From Aplysia californica (Eukaryota): DNA of 64,000 bases. The stretch is taken from contig NW_004798181.1 of NCBI RefSeq assembly GCF_000002075.1, forward strand, positions 7,063 to 71,062, given 5' to 3'. Made by a program: the position numbers and the translations under genes. Shown here in pieces: positions 28,193 to 60,950 of this stretch. The stretch's first letter is position 1. Each line of letters begins with the position of its first letter. A model generated the notes under the pieces. It saw nothing but the letters and a program-made list of their open reading frames with translations. It made no database searches and had not been told where the DNA came from.

Positions 28193-30117
28193 TCACAATT
28201 GTAAGGTTTTTCTAGTGTGTATTATTTTTTCATGGATCAGTAGATTAAGCTTCTGAGTAAACTCAGCTCCACAGATTTCACACTTGTAAGGCTTTTCTCT
28301 TGTGTGTGTTCTCATATGTGCTGTCAAGCGACTGCTCTTAGGAAACTTCACACCACAAACTTCACACTTGTACGGGTAAGGCTTTCCTCCTGCGTGTGTT
28401 CTCATATGCACCGTCAAGCGGTCGCCCTGAGCAAACCTAACACCACAAACTTCACAACCGTAAGGCTTTTCTTGGCTATGTGTTCTTTCATAATGAGTCT
28501 TCAAACCGTATCTCGATGTAAACCATTTACCACAAACTTCACATTTGAACGATTTTTCTCCAGTGTGCGTTTTTTTATGTCTCTTTAAATAGCTTTTTAG
28601 TGCGAACTGTTTGCCACAAACTTCGCAGCCGTAAGGCTTTTCTCCTGAGTGCGTTTTCTCGTGGGCGTGTAGATTGGCTGTGTTTATGAACCTAAGTCCG
28701 CAGACTTTACATTTGTAAGGCTTTTCTCCTGTGTGTGTTCTAGTATGCACAATCAAATATTGCCTTAAAGTGAACCCAATGCCACAAACTTCACACTTGT
28801 ACGGTTTTTCTCCGCTGTGTCTCTTTCTATGACTCTTTAAGCCAGAGGCTCTTGCAAACCGTCTATCGCAATCTTCACACTTGTAAGGTTTTTCTCCAGA
28901 GTGTAGTTTTCTGTGACTCTTTAGAGAGCCACTCTTGGCAAATTTAGCACCACAAACATCGCATCCGTAAGGCTTTTCTCCTGTGTGTGTTCTTTTATGA
29001 ATCTTTAGATCACTACACTGTGCAAACACAGCATCACAAACTTCACACTTATAAGGTTTTTGTCCAGTGTGAGTCGTGCCATGAATCCTTAAATCTTGTT
29101 TCCGTGCAAACCGTTTATCACATACTTCACATTTGTAAGGTTTCTCTCCCGAGTGAATTATTTCATGACTCTTCAAACCGCCCGGCTCTGCAAACTGTCT
29201 ACCACAGACTTTGCACTGGAAAGGCTTTTCGCCCGTGTGTTTTCTTTTGTGGCTCTGTAGTTTTATCTCATTTTTTAAGCCAACGCCACATATTTCACAG
29301 TGGTAAAGCTTTTCTTTCATAGCATGTGTTCTTTTGTGACTCTTCAGATGAATGCTCTCGGCAAACTTTTCACAGCAAACTTCACACTTGTAAGGGTTTT
29401 CTTCTAGATGAATCCGCTTGTGTCTGTTAAGGCTTCGAGCATGTATATACCCTGCACCACAAACATCACATTTGTAAGGCTTTTCTTTTTCTCCAGCACT
29501 TATTCTTTTGCCAGTCGCAGACTTGGGTCCATCAGGGACAGCGTTGCTATCTTGTCCAGGAGGAGTCTCTCTGTGCAGTTGTTGAGGTAATGCACCACCA
29601 GAAGACTGGGTACAATTAGTGGATGGAACAAGAGATTGTGAACAAGAAGTCGAAGAAAAGCCCAAGTCGGAAATGTCACTTGTGGACTGCCGAACAATAT
29701 CTGGGCTGTAGTCACATGATGGCTCGTTCAACTTTACCGTAGTGCGTTCTTTTAGCGGTTTTTCTTCAGATGCCTGCGTGAAAATATGACATACGTGCTC
29801 CGTTCCCGAAGTGGTATTCGCCATAACCATCGTTATTTCGGAAGCGTAACCTTTCTGCTTCTGGCCATCATTTACTGCACTTTTGCTGCACATGTCCTTA
29901 TCATACTCTCTGCTGAGATATAGATCAAAGACTTTCTTCTCCGGATTATGGATAGAAGATGTGGTTTCTTCCGAGGCACGGTCATCTTTTCTTTGATCAC
30001 CTATTTGACTTGTGTCAACAACATCGCAACTAGGACCGACTCCGTGTCTCTCCAAGAGGTATTGCTGTGTTGCTGGGTGTGTGGAGGTAGCCAGACTGTG
30101 GTCGTAAGGAACGCCAC
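28193..30117 (-). CDS. ZF gene A, finger-array exon: Ser/Thr-rich spacer + 15 tandem C2H2 fingers (spliced product ~972 aa)
   Basis: Acceptor ttttgtctttttccag|GT. 15 CxxC..HxxxH units with TGEKPY-type linkers. Phase 1 joins the exon at 35527..34534. Confidence 0.92.
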
Positions 30118-30753
30118 CTGGAAAAAGACAAAAGTAATACACACATTATCTGACTGGTAAAATTTCTACTGTCTCCCAATAACTTGGCAGCCCACACACT
30201 CGCATACCTTTTCTTCATAGTAGCCGTTTTCTCTCAACACCATTGTCATATTCCTCTTGACAACTTTTCAAACATGCACATACATCGTGCAACAGTAGAG
30301 CACTTGGCTTTTATTGTACCAAAATTAGAGGGGATAGCTAGAACTGCTTTGTTTTATCAGAAAAAACAAAAAAACAGAAAAAAATTGTAAGTGGTTTGGG
30401 AGGGGGAGGGGAATTTAATTATGTTACACTACAGACACCATGAAATAAAAACATGCTTTTGTAAACTACAGTGTGAAACATGGATAGGTCAAACACAGAA
30501 GACTCAAAATCACACCTCCGTCAAACTGTGCCCGGGGTTTCGTTTTATTTTTCTCATTTTTCTTTGTGAGACATCCGTCGAACTACGGTTCCCTCGAAAT
30601 GCAGAGGCTGGGCCAGGGTCCCGACGGATTCAAGCTATCCGTGTTACACTGTATTTCTTAATCATTCCAGCCTAATTTAAACTCTAGTATAGGTTTAACA
30701 TCCTCATAAACACTGTAGTAGTGTGTGGTTCTACAGGTATACGGTATAGTATA

Positions 30754-31513
30754 CAGCCAAAATTGTCCAAGTCCAAGACAGCCACCCATTGTCGAGGAGA
30801 AAAAGCTGGACGACTTGGACAGTGCATTACAATTTTTTTTTAACACAACGGGGAATGGGAAGTGGTCGTTTGTACAGGTGATTGTCTTATACAGGTGGTC
30901 GTTTGTACAGGTGATTGTCTTATACAGGTGGTCGTTTGTACAGGTGATTGTCTTGGACATGTGGTCGTTTGAAAAGGTGATTGTTTTGGACAGGTGGTCA
31001 TTTGTAAAGGTGATTGTTTTGGACAGGTGGTTGTTTGTAAAAGTGATTGTCTTGGACAGGTGGTCGTTTGTAAAGATGATTGTTTTGGACAGGTGGTCGT
31101 TTGTAAAGATGATTGTTTTGGACAGGTGGTCGTTTGTACAGATGATCGTCTTATACAGGTGGTCATTTGTACAGGTGATTGTTTTGGACAGGTGGTCGTT
31201 TGTACAGATGATCGTCTTACATAGGTGGTCGTTTGTACAGGTGATTGTCTTATACAGGTGGTCATTTGTACAGGTGATTGTCTTGGACAGGTGGTCGTTT
31301 GTACAGGTGATTGTCTTATACAGGCGATCGTTTGTACAGGTGATTGTCTTATACAGGTGGTCGTTTGTACAGGTGATTGTCTTGGACAGGTGGTCGTTTG
31401 TAAAGATGATTGTCTTATACAGGTGGTCGTTTGTAAAGACGATTGTCTTGGACAGGTGGTCGTTTGTAAAGGTGGTTGTCTTGGACAGGTGGCCATTAGA
31501 GTAGGTGTGACTG
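30754..31513. repeat. 33-bp minisatellite (~19 units, 30860-31492) inside a Tc1/pogo-type MITE, in the gene A intron
   Basis: Unit aggtggtcgtttgtacaggtgattgtcttatac is two 16/17-bp CAGGTG subunits. Ends TA-CAGCCAAA..TCCAAGACAGCCACC and GGACAGGTGGCC..AGGTGTGACTG form degenerate inverted termini. Confidence 0.8.
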
Positions 31514-31859
31514 CACACATGTAATAATTGTGTTGGACATCCAAACATAACACCCGTAGATTTATATATATATATATTAGGACAGTTTCAAATGGGTGGA
31601 GAAACTTGGAAACTCAATCTAAACAAACAATCTACATGCATACAGAAAAATTCGAGCTAGGGTCATCTTTTTGATTGTTTTACGATCGCAACTGCATAAG
31701 GCAAGGTCGTATGAGCGTGCGGGACACATTAAACATTTTCAGTTGTAGGAAATTTTGAATTTTGCATGGGTGGCCGAGGCCTACTTTTATCGATTTTAGA
31801 CAACTTTTTTTATATTAAAAAAACACTTTTTGCCCCCTACACAAGTACTTTAAAAAATA

Positions 31860-32075
31860 TAAGGCAGCGTCTAGGGAATAAGGAACAGAGGCAGACTGAA
31901 GAAAAGTTGGGAGGACAACATCAAGAATAGACAGGCCTGGAACTCAAAGACACGCTCAGATAAGCTGAAGACCGGAAAGGGTTTAGGAAGCTGGTGGCCA
32001 AATCTTCAAAAGCGCCCCGACGGACATCCAGTCTACGTGATAGGTGAAGGTGAAGGTGAAGGTGAAGGTGAAGGG
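31860..32075 (+). mobile_element. RTE-like LINE 3' fragment with (AGGTGA)n tail
   Basis: RGRLKKSWEDNI..TGL...AEDRKGFRKLV..APRR...LRDR* followed by the hexamer tail. Confidence 0.6.
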
Positions 32076-32264
32076 AGGAGCAGAAGATTGAGCAGACACA
32101 AAGTGGAAAAAAGCGCACTGCTCTAGTAGTTCTAGTAGAGGTTTTACAGCGCTTGCAACTGCATAAGGTCAGATGAGAAAGCGCACTGCTTTTCAAACAA
32201 GTAAGAGCCTTTGCCAATAGGTGGGTACCTAAAGTGTAGCACAGAGGGTTGATGATAGAGTTTT

Positions 32265-32302
<38 letters not shown>

Positions 32303-33025
32303 GTTTTACATGAATTTTTCTATTCCTGTATATATCTCCTTCTACAAAAACATGTATTTACAGACCTACAGATGGCATGCTAAGCTGTGTTAAACAACAC
32401 CAAGTCAAATTCTTTTGGACATAACTATGATGACACATTTTTTAAGAATTTGGACAAACAAAATTATTTTAATTATTTTCTCATTGCTTTAATTTTCAAA
32501 CATAAGTATGAAGAGCGTATATGTAAAATGGTGAGGATTGCAGAAAAAAAAATTCTGAACGTTGCCGTTTTCACATATTAAATATAATTTGTGTCATCAT
32601 AGTTATATCTGAAAGAAATGAAAAACTTTCCATTATATTATCTTAATTTCTCTTTTGAAAATTTTGGCAAACAGATTCAGGAGATTCAATTTGACTCACA
32701 ATGCATGTTAATGATGACAAAAAGCCACTTTATTCACATTTTTTTACTACAAATCTTCTCTGCAAAATATTAAATATCTTTCAAACATAACCATGATGAA
32801 CAAAATGGACAAATCTTTTACATCAAATTGAAAAAGATCCTGAAAAGTAATTTATGGAATATAAATGTTTACAATACATCGCAGTACCAAAGTAACATAA
32901 CAAGCAAATGCTACTGATACACGTATCAAAACAAATATAATGTAAGAAAAAAAGGTAAAATCAATGGGCTAACTGGTAACTTTCTAACCTCATAAACAAA
33001 AAAAGGAATTAAATTTCCCAATTAA

Positions 33026-33266
33026 CCCTCCCATATGTCGTGTTTTACTATCGTATCCCTACAACGTGGGGAACTCTGTGCCATCACTTTCCAAAGAAGA
33101 AATTTACTCGTTCATCCGATCTGTATGCGTTGCATGGCAGTCTGTCAAAATGATTTTTTGAGAAATACTGAAAGTTTCAAAGAGATCTTCGTTCTAGAAG
33201 TATTTTCTAAAATATGAAGAGTACAACCTTGAGGGTACAAAATGACCCCAGGGTGTACGGATTAGG
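33026..33266 (+). mobile_element. piggyBac-like MITE (TTAA-flanked); inverted partial copy at ~5250-5470
   Basis: TTAA-CCC...AGG-TTAA. The body is the reverse complement of 5250-5470. Confidence 0.5.
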
Positions 33267-34533
33267 TTAACAACAACAGATAAAGTAGCAACATTCATCT
33301 AAATATTGGTGACAAACAAAGCCCCCAAAAGAGTTGCAGAATAGGCTAGGGGTGGGGATGAAAATGGCCGAACCACAGAATAAGCACAAACTTGAACTCT
33401 TTGGTTGCTCGCCCTTTCATTAATCCTATCCATTAAAAATAAAATGGGGTCTTTGACCTGTATTAACTTGCAGCCCCATCTTTAAAAATAGAAACCTTTT
33501 ACTTTTGAAGACTCGTAAAGGATGACTGCAAAATTACGCAGGGTCTCAGTTTCGAAATCGGTCTGGGCAGAGAGTAAACAATGAACGAAACTTGCTCGTT
33601 CCTGGGCCCTAAAATAGGCCATTGAAACAAAGTTACAGGGAATAGAAATTGCCTTGCGAAATGACGCCACATGAACATCTAGAAGACTCACAATTAAAAA
33701 AGAGCACAGGAGATCTTTATTCCTGATGTAGCACCACAAATATTGTAATAGTAGTTTCAATCTAGAAGGATGACTTTCTCAGCGTTAATTTCATTGCTGA
33801 ACTTGACGCGGCAAAAAAAATACAAACCCGACGCGTCACATTTGCGTTCTAAAAATACATCATTTCAGATTTTAATATATATATATATATTATATATATA
33901 TTATATTTGTCTGCTCCCATAGCTGAAACACCACACTAAGCACAACATATATTTTATACAATTTGTCAAAGCTGTAGAATTATTTCTTTGTTTACAAGTG
34001 CTAGTAGAGGTTTTACGGTGCTCGCAACTGCATAAAGGTCAAATGAGCGCCAAGGGGTGGATGTCAACAGAGAAGTCCTTACAGGAAATCAGACTTACTC
34101 TCCTCACCCCTCTTGCTTCAACAGCACAAAGTCTGCTTCAACTATAAAGACACCCTGGATATAGTGGGTCACAAGAGTGTGACAAACATACAAAATTTAA
34201 TAAGAAGTAGAGGGAAAAATGACAAAAGTAAGGATTAGGAAAGAAAAAGCAGTAGTTCTCTTCATTGCAGTTCAGGCACAGTTACGAGCATGACATTGAT
34301 GAATCAGCACATTTACAAAATTACAATTCAACTGTGCATAAAAGGGCAAGGTCAATTAATGTCCCCCCTTTGGGAATGGTCTAAAGACTTCAGTCAGTAG
34401 CACCGCCCCGGGGGGAGGAATCATTATTATTGGAATAGGAAAGGATTTTGTAAGGTCTTTGTGATGAAACCCCCGATCTATTGGCAAAGGCTCTTTTTTA
34501 AATTAATTATCATGTGATCCCTCATACTTTTAC

Positions 34534-35527
34534 CTTGATCTGAGCCGGCCAAGACAGCATAACCAGAATTTGCGACATTGTTTTCCAAAAGAGCTGAGTC
34601 AGCAGAAAAAGATAAAGTTGAACCGTCACCAGTTACAACATCAGCATGATCAGTGCCTGCGTGCGAACTCTGTCCTGCACACAAACTCGTCACATCAGCG
34701 ATTTGCTGTTGTATTTCTTCGGCCTCATTATAACAATCCAACATTGATCCACACTCCTCTTCCAGCACTTCCTGCTTCACATTGACATTATTCTCTATTT
34801 CCTGTTTCATTTCCAGACGGTGATTAGGGAAAAGTCCAAGCTGTGGTTCATCTTTCAAAACACAAGTACATTTCACACACGTTACTTTAGTCTCTATGTT
34901 TTCTTCTCCCTGCTTCACATTAAGTCTATCATCATCTAGATCTAGTTCAGTCTTCACTTCTGGACAATGATTAGGGAAAAGTCCAAGCTGTGGTTCCTCT
35001 TTCAAAAAACAAGTCGGTCTACATTTCTGACACTCTTCAGTCTTTGTGTTTTCTTCTTCAGGAAATGAAAACAAGGGCTCGTCTCTATCAATCTCAATGT
35101 CAATACATTCGTTTTCGACAGGCTGGCAGACATCAGTTACATCGCATGGTAGGTCTGCTTCAACATCTTGCTTTATTTCTCCTTTGAAACTTTCACTTTC
35201 AATAGCTGCAGGTTTTTCCTCTTCAAGTTCAAGCATGGAGCTAGAACCAAACTCTTCTTTTACCACAGACTCCCCACTCCTGATGTCAGGTTTTACAGGA
35301 TCTCTATCAGTACTATCACTATCACTGCTACAACAAGACCTAGGAGAACCACAGGGTTCAGTTTTCACAACAGGAAAAACATCAGGCTTTACGTCTTCAC
35401 CATTATCAGTGGGTGTACAGACATTAAGTTGACAACACGATTCTTTTTCCATAGCACTGTCATCATTAAAATCTTGTCCTGAGGAAAACATTGTATTCTC
35501 CTTCCTCTTTTTATCCACATTCAACAT
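34534..35527 (-). CDS. ZF gene A, acidic N-terminal exon (MLNVDKKRK...SDQ)
   Basis: ATG 35527 aligns with the paralogue B start (MLNMNRKKK). Donor GATCAAG|gtaaaa is identical in all three paralogues. Confidence 0.88.
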
Positions 35528-38432: not shown

Positions 38433-38603
38433 NNNNNNNNNNNNNNNNNNNNNNNNNNNNNNNNNNNNNNNNNNNNNNNNNNNNNNNNNNNNNNNNNNNN
38501 NNNNNNNNNNNNNNNNNNNNNNNNNNNNNNNNNNNNNNNNNNNNNNNNNNNNNNNNNNNNNNNNNNNNNNNNNNNNNNNNNNNNNNNNNNNNNNNNNNNN
38601 NNN

Positions 38604-39251: not shown

Positions 39252-39674
39252 CTGGTCGGCCTAGATCTAAGCCTACTTCTTTCTTTATGTCACCAACGAT
39301 GTCAAGCGCAAGAGAAAATGCTTTTCAATTGACAAAAAATACGAAATAATCCAGACTGTTGACAAAAAGCAAGCTCCACTGGAAGAGATTTGTCGTCAGT
39401 TCGACATTACACAAGGATTGATTCACACCATTATCAAGGATAGAGAGAAGATAGTGGCAGCATACTCCAATGGAAAGTTTGCTCTGGATCGAAAGAAGAT
39501 GAGACTACCCGGTGCAGATGCTGTGGACCAAGCTCTTCTGATGTGGTTTAAGGAGGCAAGGAGAAAGTTGGTGCCAAAATCCCTGTTCGTGGGTACTTGT
39601 GGCTAGGGAAACTACCGAGGATCGGATATAACAGGACTTTTTCTCTACTCCCATCATCCCTGTTATATCACTAA
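38987..39674 (+). mobile_element. Internally deleted Tigger/pogo transposon with N-terminal transposase fragment (HTH-psq + CENP-B HTH)
   Basis: TA-CAGTGGAAACC..ATAACAGG TIR. The frame from 39301 reads VKRKRKCFSIDKKYEII...EICRQFDITQGLIHTIIKDREKI...RKKMR...VDQALLMWFKEAR. The right end runs into a gap. Confidence 0.85.
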
Positions 39675-40029
39675 NNNNNNNNNNNNNNNNNNNNNNNNNN
39701 NNNNNNNNNNNNNNNNNNNNNNNNNNNNNNNNNNNNNNNNNNNNNNNNNNNNNNNNNNNNNNNNNNNNNNNNNNNNNNNNNNNNNNNNNNNNNNNNNNNN
39801 NNNNNNNNNNNNNNNNNNNAAGTGTCCCCATGGAGATCAATAAAGTGTTTGATATACATGATGTAGGCCTACTTATGTTATTTATTTTATTTATATTTTT
39901 ATCTTAACTAAAGTATAATTTATATTCATATATAGATAAATGGGTCATGCTACGACCTATTTGTTTTACAACATACTAACATAGTTGATTCGGTCCACCA
40001 AGCTATTGGTACACTTTCACTTATGACAG

Positions 40030-42389: not shown

Positions 42390-43209
42390 ATGTTGAATAT
42401 GAACAGAAAAAAGAAGGCAGAGACAATGTTTTCCTTGGGACATATTAATGACGGAAGTCTGATGGAAAAAGAACAATCATGTTGTGAACCTTTCTGTGCA
42501 CCAGTTATAGATGAAGACATAAAGCCTGATGTTTCTCCAGTTGTAAAACGTGAACCTGGGCTTGGTTCTTCTACATCTAGGCCAAGGTTTCATTGTACTT
42601 GTAGAAGAAATGGGACCGAAAGTGATGTAAAAGTTGACATTGGAAGCGTTGAGACCGTCGTAAAAGAAGAGTTTGGTTCTTACTCTGTGCCCAATCTTGA
42701 AGAAGAAAACGCTTCTTCTGGTGATAGCGGAAGTTTTGATGGAAAAATAAAGCATAATTTTGAAGGACCATGCAATGCTACTGATGAGGTCAGACAGACT
42801 GTTGAAAACAAATGTATTGACATCAAAATTAAAGACGAGCCTTTGTTTTTGTTTCCTGAAGAAGACATAACACCAAAAATTAAAATGAGTCCGAAAAGTG
42901 CTGATGTTGTGGAAGACGAACTCCAGTTTCCTGATCATAGTCTGGAATTAAAATTAGAAATACAGAATTATTATGTGAAGCAGGAAGTGTTGGAACAGGA
43001 GTGTGTATCCACGTTGGATCGTTCCAGTGAGGCTGGAGGAATACAACTGAAAATCTGTGATGTGAAGAGTTTGTGTGCGGAGCCGAGTTCAAACCCAGAC
43101 ACTGATGCTGTTGTGTCCACGGTCAGCGGCTCTACTTCTGATGATCCAGCTCTTTTGAAAATGAAATACGGCATCGCAAGCTCTGCTCAATGGGGCATTG
43201 AGGATCAAG
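42390..43209 (+). CDS. ZF gene B, acidic N-terminal exon
   Basis: ATG start; clear homology to the A and C exons; donor GATCAAG|gtaaaa, phase 1. Confidence 0.88.
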
Positions 43210-45865: not shown

Positions 45866-46185
45866 TAGGGACAGGAGAAAACCCGTACAAGTGTGAAATC
45901 TATGGAATTGTGTTCTTGCAGATGAGTAGTGTAAAGATTCACCAAAAAAAACCACACACACTGGATAAAAACCTTACAGGTGTGAAGTTTGTGGTGCTAA
46001 AGACTCACCACCGAGGAATACACGCTGGAGTGAAGCTTTGCAAGTGCGACGTTTGTGGTGCAGGATTTGCAAATGGTGACGACCTGAAATAACACAAAAG
46101 CACACACGATGGAGAAAAACTTTACAAGTACAAGTGTGAAATCAGTGAAACTACGTTCTCGTGAAAGAGCAATCTGCAGACATGT
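45866..46185 (+). pseudogene. Frameshifted relic fingers after the gene B stop
   Basis: Colinear with gene C 59340-59680 (e.g. CKCDVCGAGFANGDDLK) but with stops and indels. Confidence 0.8.
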
Positions 46186-46388
46186 GATGGTGAGATTGCG
46201 ATTTCAGGGGTTTGAGCATCAGCTCGGTCCGACATTGAGTCCTTGGAAAAGGCACTTCTTGAATTTCTTATTTCACTCTGTCTTTTCGGAGATGGGTGTT
46301 AAAATACTCGGAGGTCCCACGACTTAAACATGTTGTGTTGATGGGGGCTTAAACGTATACCATTTTACCATTTTAGATGTTTTCTGTC

Positions 46389-46520
46389 AACCCCTCCTTT
46401 ATGAACTGGGTCAGTATCTCACACTTCTCGTCTGCTAACCCTCCGTTATGAACTGGGTCAGTATCTCACACTTCTCGTCTGCTAACCCTCCTTTATGAAC
46501 TGGGTCAGTATCTCTCACTG
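46389..46520. repeat. ~47-bp tandem repeat x3
   Basis: aaccctcctttatgaactgggtcagtatctcacacttctcgtctgct. Confidence 0.8.
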
Positions 46521-47109
46521 CTGCACTCACCTGCCAGCTGGAGACGTTTTAGACCCCCCGGGGCAGTGCCACTGACTGAAGTGTCTTTAGGCCATTCCCA
46601 AAGGGGGGACATTTCTCATTCAAGCATAGTAGAATTGTAAATGGGCTGACTCATGTCACGCTCATAACTGTGCCTGATCTACAACAGGGAACTGCTGCTT
46701 TTTCTTTCCTGATCCTTACTATTGTCATTTCCTCAACTTCTTTTGTATGTTTGTCACTCTCTTGTGACCTGCTATTTCCGGGGTGCCTTGATACTTTAGT
46801 CGAAGCAGACCTTGTGCTGTTGAAGCTAGAGAGGTGAGCAGTCTAAACCTGATTTCCTGTAAAGACTTCTCTGTTGACACCCACCCCTTGGCACTCATAT
46901 GACCGTATGCAGTTGCGAGCGCCGTAAAACCCTCTCCTATTAAAAAAAAAAGGAGACGTTTTATTTCTTCCAACTTCTCAAGGGACACAGCGGCTTTCTG
47001 TATCTAGTATCACATGCAGTGTCAACAAATGCATCCATTTAATTTTTCTCCTCTCCGAGAAATTTTTGTTTTTTGCTCGAGTCTCCACAATTAATGAAAG
47101 CATCAGACA

Positions 47110-47550
47110 CTCGTCCCTGACACATCTTACCCCCTTCAGGGAGGTGAAGCCGTTCTGTATCGGATGCGACACAGATTTTACCATTAGACACATTTTGACA
47201 GAATGTCTAGACTTCGGAGAGACCCGAAGGAAATATTTTAGATGCAAAAGATTGCAAGGTCTGTTTTCCGTCGTTGATTCCAACAGAATTCTGGATTTTA
47301 TAAAAGCCATTGGCCTTTATATGGCAAGTTGCTGATGGAATTGTTAAAAAATTTTAATGTTTTTTATAAAGTTGTTTTAAATTATTTACATCAAATTTTT
47401 AGTAGGCCTATTTTAGCATTTTCATTTTGATAGAGGGGTTGAGCAGAATCGGGCTATGCAGTGTACTGTTGCAAACAGAACCAACCTTTTTTCGCGCGCT
47501 CAGGTGACCTTATGCAGTTGCGAGCGCCGTAAAACTCTTACTAAAACAAA
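47110..47550 (+). mobile_element. Nimb/I-group LINE 3' fragment
   Basis: CIGCDTDFTIRHILTEC CCHC motif. The 3'UTR ends gcgctcaggtgaccttatgcagttgcgagcgccgtaaaactcttactaaaacaaa. Confidence 0.8.
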
Positions 47551-50154
47551 TGACAGAGAGAAAGAGTGGGTGGTTGGCGGGTGCTCTGGTGTGGTTTGCT
47601 TCTTCTTTCCTATACTCTGAAACATCTATATATCGTCCTTATCTCCCCTTCTTCTTTTTTATGTTTGTTACTCTCTTGTAACGCCTCTAATCTTCTGGCG
47701 CTCATATAACCCTATGCAGTTGCAAAATCTTACTAAAACAAATGACTGAGAGAAAGAGCCTAAAGGTTAGAGTTAGAGATTATTTTGTTTCATTGTTTTC
47801 AAAGAGGTTTACTAAATGAAAAAACAACAACTTTACTACATGTAATGAAAAGACAAGACCATCAACACGAACTGTTAAATGTTAAATTAAAGCATGGAAA
47901 AAAAGCATGGCAGACAAATAGAAACACCTTGAATCATGGTAGATCTAAGCTTCTGAGAGCAATACAAAAACATGTGGCCAACACCCCCTCCCCCCCCCCC
48001 CCCCCCCCCTTCCATTTTCAAAAGTTATAGAAAAAAAAAACAAAAAGCCACTCCGGTTCGGAATAGGGCCTGCTTCGTTCTTTCCCCCGGGTGTTTCGGT
48101 TTTTCTGTCGGCCTTTTCCCCACCACTAAACTGTCCCCATCGTTTTTGCAAGAAAAAATTCTAAAATTATGCAAACTGAGCCCAAAAGATGGGAAATTTT
48201 TTGTTTCTTTTATTTTTAACAAAGAATGTTTTTTTAAGGAAAATATTCAGAAATTATGCAAAAAAATTATCAATTTTTGCTAAATTAGGCGGGGGGCATA
48301 AAACCCGGGGGACAGACTAAAGTAAATGCGGGGTTTTTTTTGTCCAAATGTGCTTCTCGTTCCCCACCAACCAAACGAATCCAAGCAAACCCATGAATTT
48401 TTGAAATTTTGTGTCCACCAAAGCAAACCCAAGACTTTTTTTATGAGAATGATTCTGACTAGTCTGGGGGGGTCCAAACATGCAGGGGGGGCGGCCCCAA
48501 AATAATGTCAAGTAAGTTTTGATGATGCGGGGTTTAGAGGGGGGGTTTCCCTGAGCTGGTTCCTTCTAAAGCCAGGGATGCCAAATGTCCTGTTTTTCCA
48601 GGGGGGGGGGGGGGGGGGGTTCATCCTTTGGAATTGCAAAGGAAAGGGGAGGGGTAAGAGTAAGAGAGAATATGTTTTTGTTTGCTCATTTTAAAAAAAA
48701 AAGCTTTACAAGGTTCGGTTTGGTTGAGATGTGATGCTCCACTCATTTTCAGGTGTTTTTTTCAAAAATCATTTGGCATCCAGGGTAAAGAAAACACCAG
48801 GGCGCTGTACAGTGATGACCAGCAATGGCATGTTTGTAAAATTGTTCCCTCTTGGTGTAATGTTGAGTATATTTGCTGACATGTTGGCCTATTCTTGGTT
48901 GTGTGTACCATTATATAAATGTAGCCTGTTTTACTAGTTTTAGTTTTAAAAAGTTACAATTATTACAATGTATGTTATGTTTGTTTGTTATTGTAATCGG
49001 AGATCAATAAATTGTTATCCGGCACATATGTATTTATTTTATTTATTAAATTTTATTTCTACTGTTTATTTAATTATAGGGTAGGTTCTACTTCTTTACT
49101 TTCTCTCTGTTGTTTCTGTGTGTCTATCCATCTTACTTTTTCTCAGCACTAATATTACTAATAAATGAACATCAGTGTGCTTCTCTTTACTCAAACAAAC
49201 AAACGGCCGGTGGTTGGAGGACGCCACTGGTGGTAGGTCCTACTTTTTTACTTTCCCTTTGTTATTTTTGTCTGTCTGTCTTTGTGGGTGGTTGGCGGGT
49301 GCTCTGGTGTGGTTTGCTCCTTCTTTCCTATCAAACATCTGTCGTCCTTATCTCCCCTCCTTCTTTTTTGTGTTTGTTACTCTCTTGTAACAGTAACACC
49401 TCTAATCTTCTGGCGCTCATAGTCATATGACCTTATTCAGTTGCGAGCGCCCTAAAACCTCTACTAAAACTAAAACTGTCTTTCTTTTTTTTTCAAGCAC
49501 TAATTAATAACACTAAATCTATTATTTTATTCGATGTGCTTCTCTTTACTCAAATATAAACAAACAAACGGTGGGTTGTTGGCTGGTGCTCTGGTGTGGT
49601 TTGCTTCCTCTTTCCTATCAAAAACGTCTATCGTCTTTATCTCCACTCCTTCTTTTTTGTGTTTGTTACTCTCTTGTAACACCTCTAATCTTCGGCACTT
49701 ATAATAACTTACAGCGGAACTCGGATTCAACGAGGTCGCTGGGCCTGACCTAAAATCTCGTTGAATCCGAGTTTTCGTTTATAGCAAACTCGAGGTTTTG
49801 TGTAGATAATTACAGGCACTGAGCAAGTAATGTATAAAGAGAAGTCACAAGTAGTGCTTGAAATGCCTGCATATTATGAGCTGGGTAAAGAGAGACCGAT
49901 TTGTTCAAATGCACACATCTGTGTCATCTTGATTGTTTACCAAAAAGCTGTGTTGCTGTGTAGAGCCTAGCATACGGCAACTTTTGATTCCATAGACGAG
50001 CGCACAATTCATTACGTCCCCCCCCCCCCCCCCTTCCATGTTTCAAAAGTTATAGCGAGATGTTGGAGAGCGCCACTCGGGTCTGGATAGGTCCTGCTTC
50101 GTTACTTTCCCTCGGTTGTTTCGGTCTTCTGTCTGACTTTTCCCCAACACTAAA

Positions 50155-50339
50155 CTGTCCCCATCGTTTTATGCAAGAAAAATTCTAAAATTATGCAAAC
50201 TGAGCCCAAAAGATGTGAAATTATTTGATTCTGTTAATTTTAACAAAGAATGATTTATTAAGGAAAATAATCAGAAATTATGCAAAAAAATTATCAAATT
50301 TTGCTAAATTATGCGGGGTGCATAAAACCACGGGGACAG
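50155..50339 (-). mobile_element. 6-bp-TSD MITE copy 4 (an error-rich duplicate lies at 48131-48315)
   Basis: actaaa-CTGTC...GACAG-actaaa. Confidence 0.85.
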
Positions 50340-51242
50340 ACTAAAGTAAATGCGGGCGTTATTTTGTCTCAATGTGCTTCTCGTTACACAACAAACAAAC
50401 GAATACAAGCAAACACATGAATTTATGAAATTATGTGTACAGCAAAGCAAACACAAGACATTTTTTATGAGAATGAGTCTGACTAGTCTGAGTGAGTACA
50501 AACATGCAGTGAGTGCAGACTCAAAATAATGTCAAGTAAGTGTTGATGATGCGGGGTTTAGATGGGGGGTGTCACTGAGCTGTGTCCTTCTAAAGACAGG
50601 GATGCCAAATGTCCTGTTTTTCCAGGNNNNNNNNNNNNNNNNNNNNNNNNNNNNNNNNNNNNNNNNNNNNNNNNNNNNNNNNNNNNNNNNNNNNNNNNNN
50701 NNNNNNNNNNNNNNNNNNNNNNNNNNNNNNNNNNNNNNNNNNNNNNNNNNNNNNNNNNNNNNNNNNNNNNNNNNNNNNNNNNNNNNNNNNNNNNNNNNNN
50801 NNNNNNNNNNNNNNNNNNNNNNNNNNNNNNNNNNNNNNNNNNNNNNNNNNNNNNNNNNNNNNNNNNNNNNNNNNNNNNNNNNNNNNNNNNNNNNNNNNNN
50901 NNNNNNNNNNNNNNNNNNNNNNNNNNNNNNNNNNNNNNNNNNNNNNNNNNNNNNNNNNNNNNNNNNNNNNNNNNNNNNNNNNNNNNNNNNNNNNNNNNNN
51001 NNNNNNNNNNNNNNNNNNNNNNNNNNNNNNNNNNNNNNNNNNNNNNNNNNNNNNNNNNNNNNNNNNNNNNNNNNNNNNNNNNNNNNNNNNNNNNNNNNNN
51101 NNNNNNNNNNNNNNNNNNNNNNNNNNNNNNNNNNNNNNNNNNNNNNNNNNNNNNNNNNNNNNNNNNNNNNNNNNNNNNNNNNNNNNNNNNNNNNNNNNNN
51201 NNNNNNNNNNNNNNNNNNNNNNNNNNNNNNNNNNNNNNNNNN

Positions 51243-51493
51243 ATGAGACTACCAGATGCAGATGCCGTGGACCAAGCTCTTCTGATGTGGTTTAAGGAAG
51301 CAAGGAGGAAATTGGTGCCAAAACCCCTGTTCGTGGGTAGGCTACTTGTGGCAAGGGAAACTACCCATGAATAAGTACAGCTGGATTAGTCCACAAATGC
51401 TTACTTTCCTTTGCATTTCTGATTTAACAGGGATCGGATATAACAGGACATTTTCTCTACTCCCACCATCCCTGTCATATCAGGTTTCCACTG
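51243..51493 (+). mobile_element. Right end of a second Tigger-like element, nested at a TA within the 49712-51556 MITE
   Basis: MRLPDADAVDQALLMWFKEAR. Right TIR cctgtcatatcaggtttccactg-TA, after which the host MITE resumes (tctcatctcgttgaatccgag, cf. 37707). Confidence 0.8.
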
Positions 51494-52097
51494 TATCTCA
51501 TCTCGTTGAATCCGAGTTCTCGTTGAACCCGAGCTTGTAAAATCCGAGTTCCACTGTGTGTGACCTTATTGTGTTGCAAGTGCTGTAAAACACGTATTAA
51601 TTTATAACTAAAAATAAACAAACAGCGGGTGGTTGGATGGCGCCACTGGCGAGTCCTACTTCTACTTCTTTCTTTACTTTCCCTTTGTTATTTCTGTCTG
51701 TCTGTCTTACTTGTTCTCAGCACTAATATGAACATTATTATTATAATACAGTCACGAGTCACAGTCAAATTCGGATAAAACAGGACAGATGGGACCGGCA
51801 GTTTTTCCCTGTTATAAGCAATTCTGTTATAACCGTTTATCAACCTCAAGGGAAACAGTCAGTAGGCCTACCATTGCACCTTCAGCTTAACTTACTTTAC
51901 TCGATTAGTCGGATTACTGCAGATCCTTTAATCTGGTAGGCTTTTTTTTGCTGACACTGAGACGGAATCGATCAGTGACCCCAACACAGTGTGTTTGAAA
52001 GTTTGTTTAGGCAAGCGATCATACAAACAGGCGAAATGTAATCCTACTTGTATTGATTGAGACAAATTTTAATAATTTGACTGATCGAAAGCAGGTT

Positions 52098-52701
52098 AAA
52101 AATAAAGTTAAAAAACTACACCTCCAGTCTGTGGGAGACTCACTGGAAGAATCAAACCAACAACAAACTACATACACAACATAAGCCCAAACTGGGTCAA
52201 AGATGGGTCCAAGAAAACCTTCTTAGGACTTCTCCAGAAGGGGCGAAGTCATTTTTACTCGATTGCGCATCGGACACACGGCCCTGACATAAATTTATAC
52301 AGTCCTTCAGCGAGATGAGAAGTCGGTCTGTGTCAGATGCGACACAGATTTTACCATTAGACACATTTTAAAAGAATGTCTAGACTTCGGGAAGGAAATA
52401 TTTTTTAGGTGCAAAAAATTGCAAGATCTTTTTTCCGTCGTTGACCCCAACAGAATTCTGGATTTCAGGCCATTGGCCTTTACGGAAAGTTGTGAAAAAC
52501 GTTAAAATTTAAGATTTTATTAAAAAAGTTATTACATTTTTTTACCACAGATTCTTTTTTTTAGCATTTTAACATTTTAATAGAAATATTAACCAAAATC
52601 ACGCTGTGCTGTGAACTGTTGCGAATAAAACCAACTCGTTTTGCGTGCTCATATGACCGTATGGAGTTACGAGCGCCGTAAAACTCTTACTGAAACAAAC
52701 A
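52098..52701 (+). mobile_element. 5'-truncated Nimb/I-group LINE
   Basis: LQSVGDSLEE..NNKLHT, SRRGEVIFTRLRIGHT, CVRCDTDFTIRHILKEC. TSD aaagcaggtt/aaagcaagtt; the empty site is seen in the related sequence at ~43836. Confidence 0.85.
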
Positions 52702-53742
52702 AAAGCAAGTTCATGCGCTGCAAGACCTCTGTTATTCCGAGTCTGCACAGATCGAACCCTGCAGGCCTAGTTATAGTTATAGTTATAGTTATAGTTATAG
52801 TTATAGTTATAGTTATAGTTTAGCCAGGTTTTATTACTAACACTTAGTACTTAGTAGAGAGAAAAAAAAAAAAAACACGGGTATTTAATTTATCACTGTT
52901 GTCCCCCAAGTTCTTGACTGTAAAAACAGAGACGTTATTGTAATACATTGTAAATCAAATGGGCTTATAATTATTATGACTATATATTATTATTCGGTGT
53001 GCTTTTCTTTACTCAAACTCGAACAAACAAACAGTGGGTGGTTGGATGGCGCGACTGGTGGTAGTGGTTTAAGGTCCTACTTCTTTGTCAATACTGGTAG
53101 GTCCTTCTTCTTAACCTCTTGTTTCTGTCTGTTTGATTTTTGATTTTCCCCAGCACTAGATGACCATTATTGATATTGTGTCGATGTGCCTCTCTGTACT
53201 AAAAAAACAAAACAAAACAAGAGACAAAAAAACCTTGCTGCTGTCCTTTGCTTTTGCCTTCACTTCACAAGGATCTGTTTCACAGTCTGCACTGTCTTCT
53301 CTTTCAAAGAAGAGACATATATATAAATAATAACAATAATAATAATGAATTAATAATACATGTAATAATATTATGTTTCAATTTCAAGACTCTTCCTTCT
53401 ACTTCTATATATATTTAATATATATATATATAATATATATATTAATTATAATGTATCTGGATACACCCGCCAGAACTACTGTGTGATTCAAGTGATTGGC
53501 TCTCTCACAGCAGTGCATGGTCAGCTCTTTAGACAACGAAAATCTTATTTTGACATGCATGATGTTTTTTGTTAGTTTTTAATTTTAAATTATAAATCTC
53601 AATAAATTTGACGTATCCCACAGATTACGAAATTAATTAATTTTGATCCTGGGACTTCAAAGTGCCGAACGAATTCTCTTTTTTTTTAAACTGCCAGAAC
53701 TGTTGTAGATCTATTGCATAACTTTCACATCCGGTTCTTCAT

Positions 53743-55980
53743 TAGTGGTGTGCGAGTAAGCGAAAAATCTTGGTCGAGTAATGATCGGTTAAATGCAAAA
53801 TTGTTCGGTTAACCGATGAAATTGACCGAAAAAATTTTCTCGACCAAGAAATCTAGATCGAGCAGGGGTCAAAAGTCATCGCAGCTGCGCTGTAAGCACG
53901 CATTTTTCAGCTGATGTCTGGATCTAAAAATAGCCTAGCTTTTGGTCTTCGTCGCTTCGCGCGGTATAAAAATAAGAGTCAAATATATCGAGAAGATGCG
54001 TGCAAAGTTAGTTAATTTGTTTAACATGTATTTTGATTGCTCCTTTCGGGAAAATTGAAGAATACTGGACCACTCGTATTATTGCGAGAGAATGGGGGTG
54101 GGGGGGGTGGGGGGTTCTAAGCTAGGCCTACCTGTGTGAGAGGGATTAAAAGTGGATAAAAACTGGGGAAAATCATGAATTCCTAAGGTTGTCGAGACAT
54201 AGATATAGGCAAAAGTTGTCCGAATCCGCTGGTCCGGTAGGCCTGTTCTTCAATCTTACCTCCTTTTTTTTGTTTCTTCGCTCAGTTTCCAGCCCAGATC
54301 GAGCATATTTTATTAATAGGTTAGGCTAATTCATTGTGCTGGTATTTATTAAATGTGTTTTTCAAGAAAAGTAAAGATCTAGGCACAGAAACAAAAATCA
54401 GCACAGTAATACAGAATAACAAGTTGCAGATCAAAGTGGAAGCGTTGAAATTAAGTAAAAAGAGGAAAGCATCCAAATTACTAAGATTGAGAATGTGAAC
54501 AAGTCTAGATCGGACGAAATATTCTGGCTTAAGAGGTCAGAATGAGAGCAGAGAGAAATGAAGAGGAACTGAAATAAAGACTTGGTTTGTATAGATGCCA
54601 GTGGGTCACTGGTTTGCATGATATAAATCAGCTGATCGGACAAAGTGAGAACAACAACAACACTAGATCTAGCCTACAGACGATGCGTTTCAAGGTCATG
54701 TAGGGCCAGACGTAGATCTAGTAAGCCTACGATTCTGCTGCTGGCATGTTGGAGGGGCCTGGGTTTACGGGTTTTAATACGTTTTTATATTGTTGTTGCT
54801 GTACTGTCAGTAAATCATTTAGAAAATGGTACCAAAGATGCTTTTGGAAGAGAGCGACCTAGCGCGAAAAGCTCGCGCATACGCTTATCAACGAAAAGAC
54901 CCTCATATTAAACCTGGCTAGATCTAAAAATAAAATGTTCCGTTATGAATATTGATAAGTTGACACACTTGTCTCGCTTTCGTGCTGGTGGCGCGAGACA
55001 TTTGCCAAGTTGTTGGTTTTCCAGGAGCACAGCCATTTCAATGTCTTTTACCCTCAGTGCAGTTAAAAAACCGCGACAGTCTAAAAATAAAGAGTGGCTG
55101 CTGGGTTTGACATTCAACAAGATTCCCAATTGTGTATCTGATAGTAAATATACTCTTGGGCAGCTATTTCCTAATTAGAATATACGACTTTATTCTATTT
55201 TGACTAATAATATGACTTTAAAATATGTTTGGCATTTGTTTGTCAGCAACAAGTAATTTTAGCGTTTGATTGCTGTTTGTTCGAACAAATTTCATCATTG
55301 CCAGTTTGAGGTTTACCCAGGAGCCAGGAGCACCATTATCCCAAAAGCCTAAACGAACACAAAACCGCGACCGTCAACAATTGAAAAGGATACTAGCTTT
55401 TGTACTGAATAATGAGCTCCCAGTTCTACTATTATATTAAAAATATATCTTACAGAATTATAACTGTTATTTCACTCTTTTTAAAGCTAGAAGTTTGCCG
55501 TATCTAAAAATGAGGCAAAGATAAATATTACGTTTCGCGTTTGTTTGATAGTGACAATCAGTTTTGGCGTTTGATTGATGTTTGTTCGAGTAAGTTTCAT
55601 ATATCTGATTGCCTGTTTGAGTGTTACCCAGGAGCACCATCCTCGGGAAAGCCTAAATGGCGAACACAAAAACACAACCGTCAAAAACTGAAAATGATAC
55701 AGGTTTTTATACTGGATAATTAAAACAGATTCTACTATCATGATAAACATACATTTTATGAAATCGTAAATGCTTATTGCATTTTGTTAAAAGTTTGAAG
55801 TTTGCTGGTTTTCAAAACGATGCAATGACAAAATATGGGTTTCGCGTTTGTTTGATAGCGACAATTAATTTTGGCGTTTGATTGATGTCTTGCTCGGTCA
55901 AGAAACCATTTTGGTCGGTTTACTCGACCAAGAATCTTGCTCGGTTAATCGAAAAATTTGATCGATCAATTGCACCACTA
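53743..55980. mobile_element. Non-autonomous hAT element (2238 bp) in the 5' region of ZF gene C
   Basis: Termini TAGTGGTG...CACCACTA, perfect 8-bp TSD ttcttcat, subterminal cttggtcgagtaa/ctcgaccaag repeats and internal ~300-bp tandem units (55230-55890). Absent from the paralogous B region. Confidence 0.88.
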
Positions 55981-56523
55981 TTCTTCATTCTTCGTTAAAT
56001 TAGCCTAGGTTCTAGCCTTATCTTCAATCTTGAATCTTCATCACTTATCATACCATTGCCAGAGATGGCCATTCGCCAGAGCCGACAAAAGCCGTTCCTC
56101 CTGCAATTTTGACTTTGAAGTTGCTTTTTAACATCAACATAGATCTAGTTTATTTTTTTTAGCTCCTGATCAATTGCGGGTAAATTTTTACTTTCAGTCC
56201 CGCACACAGTTGTACTGCTTCTTCGTCGGGGGTCAAATTCTTTAGCCTATGTTGTGATCTTCAGGACTTCAGGCCTAATAGAAGTCAAGTTAGATTTTAG
56301 TGCACTCTGGTACTGGTAGATCTAGTAGTAGATCTAGATCTAGATCTAGATATCTAGAATCTAGATCTCTATAACTCGGAGGACAGAACCAAGACCAAGT
56401 TTGGAACAAATTTTTTAGTCTCTTCTTTTATTATTAGGCCTATCATAGAGGCTATGTTGAAACAGAAAGAAGAGGGAACAGACATGATTGTTTTCCTCGG
56501 GACGTATTAACCACGACAGTCTT

Positions 56524-57265
56524 ATGATGGAAAAAGAACTGTCATGTTGTGAACTTTTCTGTGTACCGGATATAGATAAAGACATAAAGCCTGATGTTTC
56601 TCTGGTTGTAAAAAGTCTTAAAAGTGAACCTGGGCTCGGTTCATCTACATCTAGGTCTCTTTGTAGCAGTGATAGGACTGATAGAGATGTAAAACCTGAC
56701 ATTGAGAATGTGAAGACTGTGGTAAACGAAGAGTGTGGTTCTAATTCTGTGCTTGATCTGGGAGAGGAAAAACCAGCTGCTGTTGTTGATAGTAGAAGTT
56801 TTGATGGAAAAGTAATGCATAATTTTGAAGTACCAAGCAATGCAACTGATGATGTCCGACAGACTGTTGAAAACAAATGTATTGACATTGAAATTAAAAA
56901 TGAGCCTTTGCTTTTGTTTCCCGAAGAAGACATAAAAACTAAAATGAGTCCGAAAAGTGCTGATGATGTAGATCTAGAAGACGAACCGCAGTTTCCTGAT
57001 CATAGTCTGGAATTGAAATCAGAAATAGAGAATTATTATGTGAAGCAGGAAGTGTTGGAACAGGAGTGTGGATCAATGTTGGATCGTTCCAGTGAGGCTG
57101 GGGGAATACAACTGCAAATCTGTGATGTGAGGAGTTTGTGTGTGGAGCAGAGTTCAAACCCAGACACTGATGCTGTTGTGTCCACGGTCAGCGGCTCTAC
57201 TTCTGATGATCCAGCTCTTTTGAAGACCGGCATCGCAAATGCTCAATGGGGCATTGAGGATCAAG
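56524..57265 (+). CDS. ZF gene C, acidic N-terminal exon (ancestral ATG at 56454 now out of frame; first in-frame ATG 56524)
   Basis: Highly similar to the B exon; donor GATCAAG|gtaaaa, phase 1. Confidence 0.75.
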
Positions 57266-57395
57266 GTAAAAAAAAATGTTATATTTATCGAAGTGTTATA
57301 CAGACCCGGTAACCGGGAACAAAGTCACGAAGTATACAGACCCGGTAGGGGAAATCTTTTGTGATTTTGGAAAGTTTCAGCGCCCAGTCCCGGAA

Positions 57396-57431
<36 letters not shown>

Positions 57432-57998
57432 AGGGGGGTGGGGGTAGAGAACACGAGGGGGAAGAGCCGGGAATATATCAGGATGCTTGAGGGCAAAATT
57501 GGGATGATGAGTGTTAGGTCTGGGAAAGGTGTAGGGAAGGAACACTATCAACGCAGATCCTGAAACTCACGATTGGAAAAGAAAAAAAAGGCATGGGTTT
57601 GTGCCATGATGATTGGTCATCAATGTTAACCTCTCTTTGCTCACCATCGGTCTATAAACCCTTCCAATCCAAGGGTCAAGTCAGTTTAAAGGAGAGACCA
57701 TCTTACTGATTATGGGCTTCAAGACGGGTCACAGTGGATTCTCCCCTTAGTGCTTTGCCTAAGATCCCATTCACCTAAGATCCTGTGTTTTCCTTACTCC
57801 CAATCAGCACGGGGATATTAGACAGAGACCACTGTACTGTAATATCTAAATTTAGAGACAGGTGGAAAGTGTTTGTTCGTCCCCTATACCCTGATGCAAG
57901 GTGAGAAAGGCATTGATGATGGTACTGAATAAAAACCTATAAGTATTTAAAAACAAGGAAAGGTAGATAACGTGCATATTATTTGTGTCTTTTTTCAG

Positions 57999-59269
57999 GT
58001 GGGATTCCTGACAAGCGCGCACCCTCCACACACCCAGCGACACAGCCATACCTTATGGGGAAGGATACTTTTGGGACAGGTCAAATGATGATTGATCAAA
58101 TAGAAGTTGACTGTGTCTTGGAAGAAACTACATCTTTTATCCATGACCCAGACAAGAAAGTCTTTCATCCCCACATTAGCAGAGAGTATGATAAGGACAT
58201 ATCATGCAGCAAAAGTGCAGTAAATGGTAGTTGTGGCCTGAAGCAGAGAGGTTGCACTTCTGAAATAACGACGACAGTGGCAAATAATACCAATGTTATG
58301 GACCTTTCTTGCGCTCCTTCTTCTAGTGTTACAGCTCCTCAGCTGCCCACAGAGACCCATACTGGACTAGACAGCGCCACTCCACCTGTTGGACTCAAGT
58401 TTATGACTTTTAGAAGAACTAGAGCTGGAGAAAAACCGTACAAATGTGAAGTTTATGTTTTACGGTTTGGAAATAGAGGCCAGCTAAATTCTCACAAGAG
58501 AACACACACAGGAGAAAAGCCTTACAAATGTGAAGTTTGTGCTGCAGCATTTGCAAGAAGTTCCGGCCTGAAACAACACAAAAGAAGACATACTGGAGAA
58601 AAGCCTTACAAGTGTGAAGTTTGTGATTTACAATTTGCACAGTGTGGCAGCTTAAAGATTCACAAAAGAACACACACAGGAGAAAAGCCTTACAAGTGTG
58701 AAGTTTGTGATTTACAATTTGCACAGTGTGGCAGCTTAAAGAGCCACAAAAGAACACACACAGGAGAAAAGCCTTACAAGTGTGAAGTTTGTGGTTTAAG
58801 GTTTGGGAATGGTAGCGCCCTGAACCGACACAAAAAAACGCACACTGGAGAAAAACCTTACATGTGCGACGTTTGTGCTGCAGCATTTGCAAGTAGTTCC
58901 GGCCTGAAACAACACAAAAGAAGACATACTGGAGAAAAGCCTTACATATGTGAAGTTTGTGGTTTAGGGTTTGCATGTAGTAGCGGCCTATGGAATCACC
59001 AAAAAGTACACACCGGAGAAAAGCCTCACAAATGTGAAGTTTGTGGTTCAGGGTTTGCCTTTCGTAATGACCTGAAACGACACCAAAGAAAACACACTGG
59101 AGAAAAACCTTACAAGTGTGAAGTTTGTGGTTTGTTATATGCCGACAGGAAAGGGCTAAAGATTCACAAAAGAACACATTCAGGAGAAAAGCCCTACAAA
59201 TGTAAAGTTTGCGATAAAGGGTTTGCACACAATAAGACTTTAAAACATCATGAAAAAACACACACATGA
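57999..59269 (+). CDS. ZF gene C, finger-array exon: spacer + 1 broken (CEVY) and 9 intact C2H2 fingers (spliced product ~670 aa)
   Basis: Acceptor tctttttttcag|GT; ORF 57983..59269; ends at a TGA inside a linker. Confidence 0.85.
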
Positions 59270-60950
59270 AACACGCATTATAAGTGTGATGAAGTCTGTG
59301 GAAGTGTGTTCGTGCAGATAAGTAATCTAGAGGACCATAAAAGAACACACATAGTAAGGACAGGAGAAAACCCGTACAAGTGTGAAATCTGTGGAATTGT
59401 GTTCTTGCATGTGAGTAGTGTAAAAATTCACCCAAAAATGCACACTGGAGAGAAGCCTTACAGATGTGAAGTTTGTGGTGCAGGCTTTGTGAACAGTGTT
59501 CAGCTAAAGACTCACCGAGGAATACACGCTGGAGTGAAGCCCTGCAAGTGTGACGTTTGCGGTGCAGGATTTGCAAATGGTGACGACCTGAAGCAACACA
59601 AAAGTAGACACGATGGAGAAAAATGTTACAAGTGTGAAATCTGTGAAACTTCGTTCTCGCGGAAGAGCAATCTGCAGATTCACAGAAGAATACACACTAG
59701 AGAAAAGCCTAATAAGTGTGACGACTGTGACGTAAGGTTTGCAATATGTTAACACCCTGAAGCTACACAAAAGAACGCTCACAGGAGAAAAGCCTTACAA
59801 GTGTGAAATGTGTGGAATTATGTTCTCTCACTTGGATACTCTGAAGTCTCACCAAAGAACACACACAGGAAAAAAGCCTTACAAGTGTGAAATCTATGGA
59901 CTTGGGTTCTCACAAACGGCTAGTCTAAAGGCTCACCAAAGAATACACTCTGGAGAAAAGCCTTACAACAACAAGTGTGAAGTTTGTGGTGCAGGGTTTG
60001 CAAACAGTAGTCAGCTAAAGATTCACAGAAGAACGCACATACGGGGAAAAAACATAATAAAAGTGAAGTTTGTGGTGCCTGTGTATGTAATAAAAACACA
60101 AAGCGACACAAAAGAAGACAGTAAGGTGGAGAACGGTTCATCTGAGATGTCTGCGGTGTAAGTGTGTGCAGTCAGTGGCAGCCTGTTTGAACATCGACAA
60201 TTGTATGCAAGAGAAAATCTCTGTCTATTTTCTAGGCAAGATCTTAGAAAGTGGCAGAAGATTACATATGGCGTAAAGTTAGTAAGAAAAAGTTTTACGC
60301 ATATGTGAAGCGTGCTGACAAAATGAGTTACTTCTCGGATTCAGGCCTTCAGGAAATAGATACATCACACTTATAGGTGAAGTTTTTACAATTTATAAGT
60401 ATGAAATAAAAGGTATGTTATACTTAAAGAATATGGCATCAATAGAAAATCTACAAATTTGACCCCAGTGTCAATTTCTGGCCAATATCTCCATTTGTGG
60501 ACTGCGAGAAGTAACTCATTTTGTCAGCACGCCTCACATATGAAGTTTGTGGTAGGCTACAAGGTTCATAGAGGACAACATGACAAATGATATTATTATT
60601 ATTATTACTATCATTTTTATTATAATTATTATTTTTAGTGTGAAATTCAAGATCGCAAATAGAAAGTCGCAGAAGATCACATGTTTAGTAAGAAAAACCT
60701 TTACGCGTGTGAAGTTTGTGGAGCAAGGTTCGTAGAGGACAATATTATATCGTATATATCTATATCTATATTATAATTATAATTTTTGTTTTTAGTATGA
60801 GATTCAAGATCGTTAGAAAAAGGCATTACTATTATTATTGTAAGAAAAACCTTTACGTATGTTGAATCGTGAAGTTTGCAGTGCAAGGTTCGCAAAGGAC
60901 AGCAGCCTTCAGAGTCTCAAAAGAGCAAGCGACTGGAGAAAAACCTAAGA
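59270..60950 (+). pseudogene. About 9 partly intact fingers plus further relics beyond the gene C stop
   Basis: ORF 59306..59752 is in frame with the CDS. A frameshift near 59745 leads into 59739..60161. Increasingly decayed tgtgaagtttgtgg units continue to ~60950. Confidence 0.85.
60305..60537 (-). mobile_element. Sola1-like MITE copy 3, inserted into a relic finger
   Basis: TSD atat; reverse orientation relative to the 9868 copy. Confidence 0.8.

Follow-up and report, generated by a model that had tools for sequence, protein, structure and literature searches.

Across animals, the number of zinc-finger genes tracks the number of retroelements, and the route by which finger proteins outside tetrapods reach the silencing machinery is open, even for the FiNZ-ZNFs of cyprinid fish (Wells et al., PMC10547256). 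Finger expansions that are confined to one lineage and have an N-terminal exon of their own are an already known kind. Here we describe such a family from a 64,000-nucleotide stretch of the sea hare Aplysia californica (contig NW_004798181.1, positions 7,063 to 71,062; hereafter the window), where it is represented by three genes, A, B and C. The tetrapod KRAB-ZFPs share with this family an effector exon followed by a single finger exon, tandem clusters, TGEKPY linkers and diversifying contact residues. The FiNZ-ZNFs are likewise lineage-restricted and clustered, with an acidic N-terminal exon before one finger exon and no similarity to known domains; they also show positive selection on base-contacting residues, and their effector mechanism is undefined as well. 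However, FiNZ is 28 amino acids long, highly conserved and found in about 700 genes, whereas the Aplysia exon is 250-330 amino acids long, loosely conserved and found at about 38 loci, several of them intronless. De-repression of transposable elements has been shown for the FiNZ-ZNFs (PMC10547256), whereas for the Aplysia family an action on such elements is a proposal. The insect ZAD-ZNFs are an independent clustered C2H2 expansion, one member of which is reported to guide a domain of histone H3 lysine 9 trimethylation (H3K9me3; PMC9822104). The ZAD itself folds around C4-coordinated zinc and serves in dimerisation, and the Aplysia exon has no ZAD match.

Our analysis supports a clustered C2H2 family that is undescribed and restricted to one lineage, in which an effector exon precedes a finger exon and the DNA-contact residues diversify fast. 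We judge it an even call that its members would be sea-hare-restricted, sequence-specific silencers that act through short motifs (ATF7IP-SETDB1 through a FAM-like motif, with help from SUMO) and have no folded effector domain. Such proteins would work like KRAB-ZFPs and FiNZ-ZNFs and be members of neither group.

Gene A lies on the minus strand (35527 to 28193), and genes B (42390-45865) and C (56524-59269) on the plus strand. All three have one acidic coding exon ending in GATCAAG before a gtaaaa donor, a phase-1 intron, and a single exon carrying a spacer and C2H2 fingers. Counted from the first ATG, the acidic exons encode 331 (A, 34534-35527, with an internal duplication of about 50 amino acids), 273 (B, 42390-43209, as in RefSeq XP_035828825.1) and 247 amino acids (C, 56524-57265), 19-24% of them aspartate or glutamate. 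The start and junction of A match RefSeq XP_005110626.2; in C an upstream in-frame ATG is lost through a frame change, which leaves 56524 as the start. The donors at 34534, 43209 and 57265 are paired with acceptors at 30117, 44697 and 57999 across introns of 4416 (A, 30118-34533), 1487 (B, 43210-44696) and 733 nucleotides (C, 57266-57998). The finger exons run to the stop codon and hold 15 fingers in A (28193-30117; 13 with canonical spacing), 8 in B (44697-45865), and 9 intact fingers plus a degenerate one in C (57999-59269). Pfam recognised 8-15 stretches of tandem C2H2 array with TGEKPY-type linkers per gene (PF00096/PF13465). The earlier note had proposed three paralogues of this architecture, with acidic exons of 250-330 amino acids and 8-15 TGEKPY-linked fingers; the coordinates, donors, acceptors and phase were all as it claimed, and our exon lengths and finger counts agree. 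Three assembly gaps lie between A and B (38433-38603 and 39675-39819) and between B and C (50627-51242). All are intergenic and the introns are free of N, so that the gaps bear on the spacing of the genes but on no reading frame or splice junction. B and C are 81% identical in DNA, intron flank included. Frameshifted or stop-separated relic fingers follow the stops of B (45866-46180) and C (59270-60090, about seven, one frameshift), and the two tails are homologous. A finger-like relic is also present about 700 nucleotides past the stop of gene A (27339-27504).

Splicing was examined by read mapping, which covered gene C only. In run X5, taken to be RNA by guess, a contig of 949 letters (contig 11) joined 56859-57263 directly to 57997-58540, with exactly the 733 letters of the predicted intron removed; two letters fit either side of the junction. 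This contig differs from gene C at about 1.6% of letters while B is just 81% alike, and it therefore represents C or an allele of it. A contig of the DNA-like run X1 lay within the C intron, a contig of run X8 (probable RNA) was compatible with the same exon join, and the stop of C was present in contigs of both X1 and X5. RefSeq predicted models have the same junctions in all three genes. Thus the proposed junction of C (57265/57999) is joined exactly in a probable-RNA contig, and for A and B the agreement is with RefSeq predictions. The models are named after unrelated human finger proteins; that of gene A is labelled 'zinc finger and SCAN domain-containing protein 2', a name that no SCAN match backs. 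XP_035828825.1 fuses B and C (42390-59269) into one protein of 1343 amino acids. We rejected this fusion, which is probably an annotation artefact, since B ends in a stop of its own and C was found to lack an AG acceptor where the model would need one. At least nine paralogues elsewhere in the genome encode the exon and the fingers together in a single open frame (637-1956 codons), and provide independent support that the two parts form one protein.

A profile built from 18 acidic exons identified at least 38 loci in the genome, a lower bound, of which about 30 could be paired with their own finger array by family-spacer searches and locus inspection. The exon is therefore not limited to A, B and C. 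The loci are clustered on contigs C282 (11 loci), C911 (four, the fourth just outside the window) and C417 (three), among others. With 177 frames of at least five fingers counted in this assembly (PMC10547256 supplement), up to a fifth of the finger arrays in the genome belong to the family. Pseudogenised members and relic fingers are common. When the profile was run against 1.84 billion representative proteins, 13 matches were obtained and no other named species was among them. Of the eleven that were traced, eight are records of Aplysia and three are fragments of animal origin on short contigs from marine metagenomes; of the other two, one fits the exon on contig C319 and one adjoins a JGI fragment in length and sequence. 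At the sensitivity of this search the family is thus lineage-restricted, in agreement with the earlier proposal of a lineage-specific expansion. No cyprinid protein was matched in this search, which sets FiNZ apart at that level and not by profile-to-profile comparison. Word-indexed homologue searches returned the query's own record alone and were little informative. Exons were used singly as queries, and the full-length queries were the natural single frame of L004 and database protein P0010. Neither this family nor a FAM motif in any finger protein of an invertebrate is described in the literature searched, which took in few subscription papers.

The layout of effector exon plus single finger exon, also part of the earlier proposal, was borne out as clustered and spliced as predicted; it is not universal, as at least nine members are intronless. 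In eight of these (L004, L010, L014, L023 and L039-L042) residues of the exon end and the spacer start are absent, and they look like in-frame deletions across the intron rather than clean retrocopies. The intronless state arose in at least two subclades, in one of which the strict FAM-like motif described below was lost. Two members are tied to very long open frames (G000 C282:790789, 4283 codons; C31:1350000-1355200, 1865 codons, with repeated spacer pieces). In a distant member, L038 (C523:607900-609300), a D-[IV]-K-P unit is repeated in tandem and the motif is intact.

Selection on the fingers was measured with 273 fingers from 22 genes, using disjoint nearest-neighbour pairs picked on non-contact codons, with held-out position sets as controls. 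(All-against-all finger comparisons of nonsynonymous to synonymous divergence, dN/dS, for A, B and C alone were saturated and uninformative, and were replaced by these pairs.) At helix positions -1, 2, 3 and 6 the proportion of nonsynonymous differences (pN) was 0.227 and of synonymous differences (pS) 0.091, a ratio of 2.5 (Fisher p 0.002); with looser pairing the contact-codon ratio was 1.6 (p 0.003). Held-out non-contact controls gave a median ratio of 0.62 and a maximum of 1.48, and never reached 2 in 60 trials. In a codon model the maximum-likelihood (ML) omega was 1.73 for contact columns versus 0.78 for framework columns; the finger tree is weak and gene conversion lies outside the model. 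The excess was confined to contact positions. The base-contacting finger codons are under positive selection. Between B and C, dS outside the fingers is 0.13-0.19, yet few finger signatures are in common.

These data bear on the view that the proteins are not silencers, being instead ordinary lineage-specific transcription factors or architectural proteins of a birth-and-death expansion, in which the acidic disordered region activates or acts as a spacer. Acidic disordered regions often activate; the exon dN/dS of 0.64-0.76 indicates weak constraint, and the frequency of pseudogenised members and relic fingers fits as well. However, dN/dS above 1 at contact codons only is unexpected under drift, and the retention of the motif and SUMO-type sites described below is also against it. 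We regard this explanation as quite unlikely.

The N-terminal exon was compared with known domains. Pfam gave no family at E<0.1, no KRAB-A match (PF01352) at E<=1, and no match to the folded SCAN, ZAD and BTB domains, in line with the earlier note's failure to recognise any of these patterns. Nor did KRAB turn up in the genome search, where its absence is not proven. Atlas feature and structure searches with the exon gave no usable look-alike, and profile comparison found exon and spacer unrelated. AlphaFold, run with a shallow alignment of 18 rows, predicted no helix or strand (predicted template modelling score, pTM, 0.15). Constraint on the exon is near that on the spacer (dN/dS 0.66-0.82), identity among A, B and C is 55-78% for the exon and 55-83% for the spacer, and indels are tolerated throughout. 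Across 18-32 aligned members, the lasting blocks are K-[DT]-E-P, V-K-x-E and I-x-[DN]-V-x-S-L. Most of the blocks described earlier as conserved, including MEKE.SCC and VENxCIDIxI, which are subfamily traits only, mirror recent duplication: they had been drawn from A, B and C, three young duplicates in which the spacer is equally conserved. On these predictions the exon is best described as a disordered, weakly constrained region with short linear motifs and, on present evidence, no folded domain; its description as a domain in the KRAB, SCAN or ZAD sense does not hold.

A 60-residue core, from V-K-x-E to S-L-C, might nevertheless be a new compact effector domain that folds upon binding a co-repressor, and so a true analogue of KRAB or FiNZ. 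This core is the part common to all subfamilies, the AlphaFold alignment was shallow, and KRAB itself is largely unfolded when alone. Nevertheless, an indel of 25-30 residues is tolerated in the middle of the core, and neither the structure prediction nor the atlas searches gave a sign of a fold. We consider a folding core very improbable.

The motif psi-K-x-E is the SUMO acceptor consensus. There are 161 such sites in 32 exons, about five per exon (eight in gene A), compared with 14.6 in shuffles, and they fall at six aligned positions. Lysine is kept in 86% of paralogue pairs in this context and in 64% for other lysines. Sites are present in all 32 members, including those that have lost the FAM-like motif.

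The FAM-like motif L-x-I-x-[DN]-V-x-S-L sits near the exon end, as IADVTSL in A (34682-34702, minus strand), ICDVKSL in B (43053-43073) and ICDVRSL in C (57118-57138). FAM is the motif that MBD1, ZMYM2, ZMYM4, ZFP518A and MGA use to dock on the FNIII domain of ATF7IP, the partner of the H3K9 methyltransferase SETDB1 (PMC7706265). The MGA FAM is IVNVTSL. ATF7IP is no longer bound when R replaces the I, V and L of this sequence, and tethering of an MGA fragment that carries the FAM brings in SETDB1 and H3K9me3 (PMC12303078). The Aplysia motif has the spacing of the MGA FAM and matches it at all three residues needed for binding. These I, V and L positions make up three of nine invariant columns in 18 members, and among 10 diverse members I, V, S and L are the sole invariant columns. 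Over 32 rows the motif is the best-conserved 10-column window (0.79, median 0.51), and its dN is the lowest of 210 windows once distant members are included. It is strict in 24 of 32 members, among them A, B and C, with the I, V and L positions kept, and it occurs in about 3% of shuffled exons. It also persists in L036, L038 and two plankton-metagenome fragments in which the exon is otherwise barely alignable. The predicted partner domain is present in Aplysia, where an ATF7IP-type FNIII (PF16794) was found in two exons on contig C271 (about 418500-420800), which score 37 and 64 bits and so exceed the Pfam cut-off of 27; one of these exons compared with the PDB gave no match. A pogo/Tigger-like transposase fragment with a weak CENP-B-type helix-turn-helix (E 0.04) lies between the head-to-head genes A and B (39271-39603, plus strand; L031, about 564-884). 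A copy 74% identical to it lies on the same contig C271 as the ATF7IP FNIII, inside an intron of the region that encodes this domain.

Several observations weigh against silencing through ATF7IP. The motif is degenerate in 8 of 32 members (one intronless subclade, one frameshifted copy and one distant member), and that subclade still holds long open frames with 13-19 fingers. With distant rows out and degenerate rows in, the motif ranks just 42 of 210 windows; together with its first rank when distant rows are included, this indicates the element best kept over long distances, yet one that can be lost. Its ML omega is 0.54 versus 0.76. It is a seven-residue match of single ancestral origin, so that its many copies are not independent. 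The genome search gave no match to PF16788, the part of ATF7IP that binds SETDB1, a split, degenerate coiled coil that such a search may miss. FAM binding in the literature found concerns mammalian proteins only (PMC7706265, PMC12303078). Finally, the polyA run X21, searched as raw reads, gave almost no coverage of the exon, which indicates that expression is low or restricted.

Multi-site SUMOylation acting through SUMO-binding co-repressors in general could account for silencing if I-x-D-V-x-S-L binds another partner or is incidental. The occurrence of psi-K-x-E in every member, motif-losers too, agrees with this, and in Drosophila silencing complexes are reported to be recruited in a SUMO-dependent manner (PMC10672805). 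It leaves unexplained, however, why the three FAM-critical positions persist in the most distant members, and we think it unlikely as a full account.

If the proteins are ATF7IP-dependent silencers, the variable finger array would bind DNA and choose the target. The acidic region would be SUMOylated at several lysines, and the FAM-like motif would dock on the C-terminal FNIII of ATF7IP (Windei), bringing SETDB1 and H3K9me3, with SUMO adding avidity to this putative docking. Duplication and finger turnover would shift the target, and the recruiting exon would serve again each time. Sequences that change fast, such as transposons, are the probable targets. The analogy with KRAB- and FiNZ-ZNFs makes transposon targeting plausible, as does the selection signal; positive selection at contact residues is compatible with such targeting and is no demonstration of it. 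The earlier note had drawn the same suggestion from transposon-dense surroundings, a ground we have dropped since the location of a gene says nothing about what its product binds. That this is, in full, a KRAB-ZFP-like transposon-silencing family of molluscs, with fingers on a disordered exon that recruits ATF7IP-SETDB1 directly through FAM and SUMO, and without a TRIM28-type adaptor or folded domain, is a tentative proposal that we would somewhat doubt.

Other features of the window are as follows. The 3′ end of a sulfotransferase gene (PF13469/PF00685) lies at 1-351 on the plus strand. Non-LTR retrotransposon 3′ fragments (zf-RVT) and related dispersed repeats are present at 15688-16035 (minus strand) and 46585-47550, with copies at 12447, 23715 and 34002. 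The intron of gene A contains a 33-bp tandem repeat of 19 copies with open frames on both strands (30862-31492). Upstream of gene C, 54500-56270 is a high-copy repeat, which the DNA-like run covers at about 100 times the depth of single-copy sequence, and a 1.8-kb contig covers it in run X8.

The proposed end point, SETDB1 and H3K9me3, is the same as that of the KRAB-ZFPs. Unlike theirs, the Aplysia exon has no KRAB match, and the proposed route runs through ATF7IP, bound directly, rather than through TRIM28. The family resembles MGA, ZMYM2, ZMYM4, ZFP518A and MBD1 (PMC7706265, PMC12303078) in that a short motif of the FAM form lies in a disordered part of proteins that bind DNA, and ZFP518A is itself a C2H2 protein. 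Those ATF7IP partners are, however, conserved single-copy genes, whereas the Aplysia motif lies in a rapidly expanding tandem-finger family and its binding is predicted. In the literature searched, no such expansion was described with an effector that combines a FAM motif with SUMO sites, and this effector is putative here. Should binding fail, the family would be an ordinary, undescribed lineage-specific finger expansion. Since a candidate partner can be named, the motif is only seven residues long and the three point mutations have a mammalian precedent, the Aplysia genes make the question of the route to silencing directly testable in an established neurobiology model. If other invertebrate finger expansions share the motif, unseen by domain databases, it would supply their missing effector mechanism.

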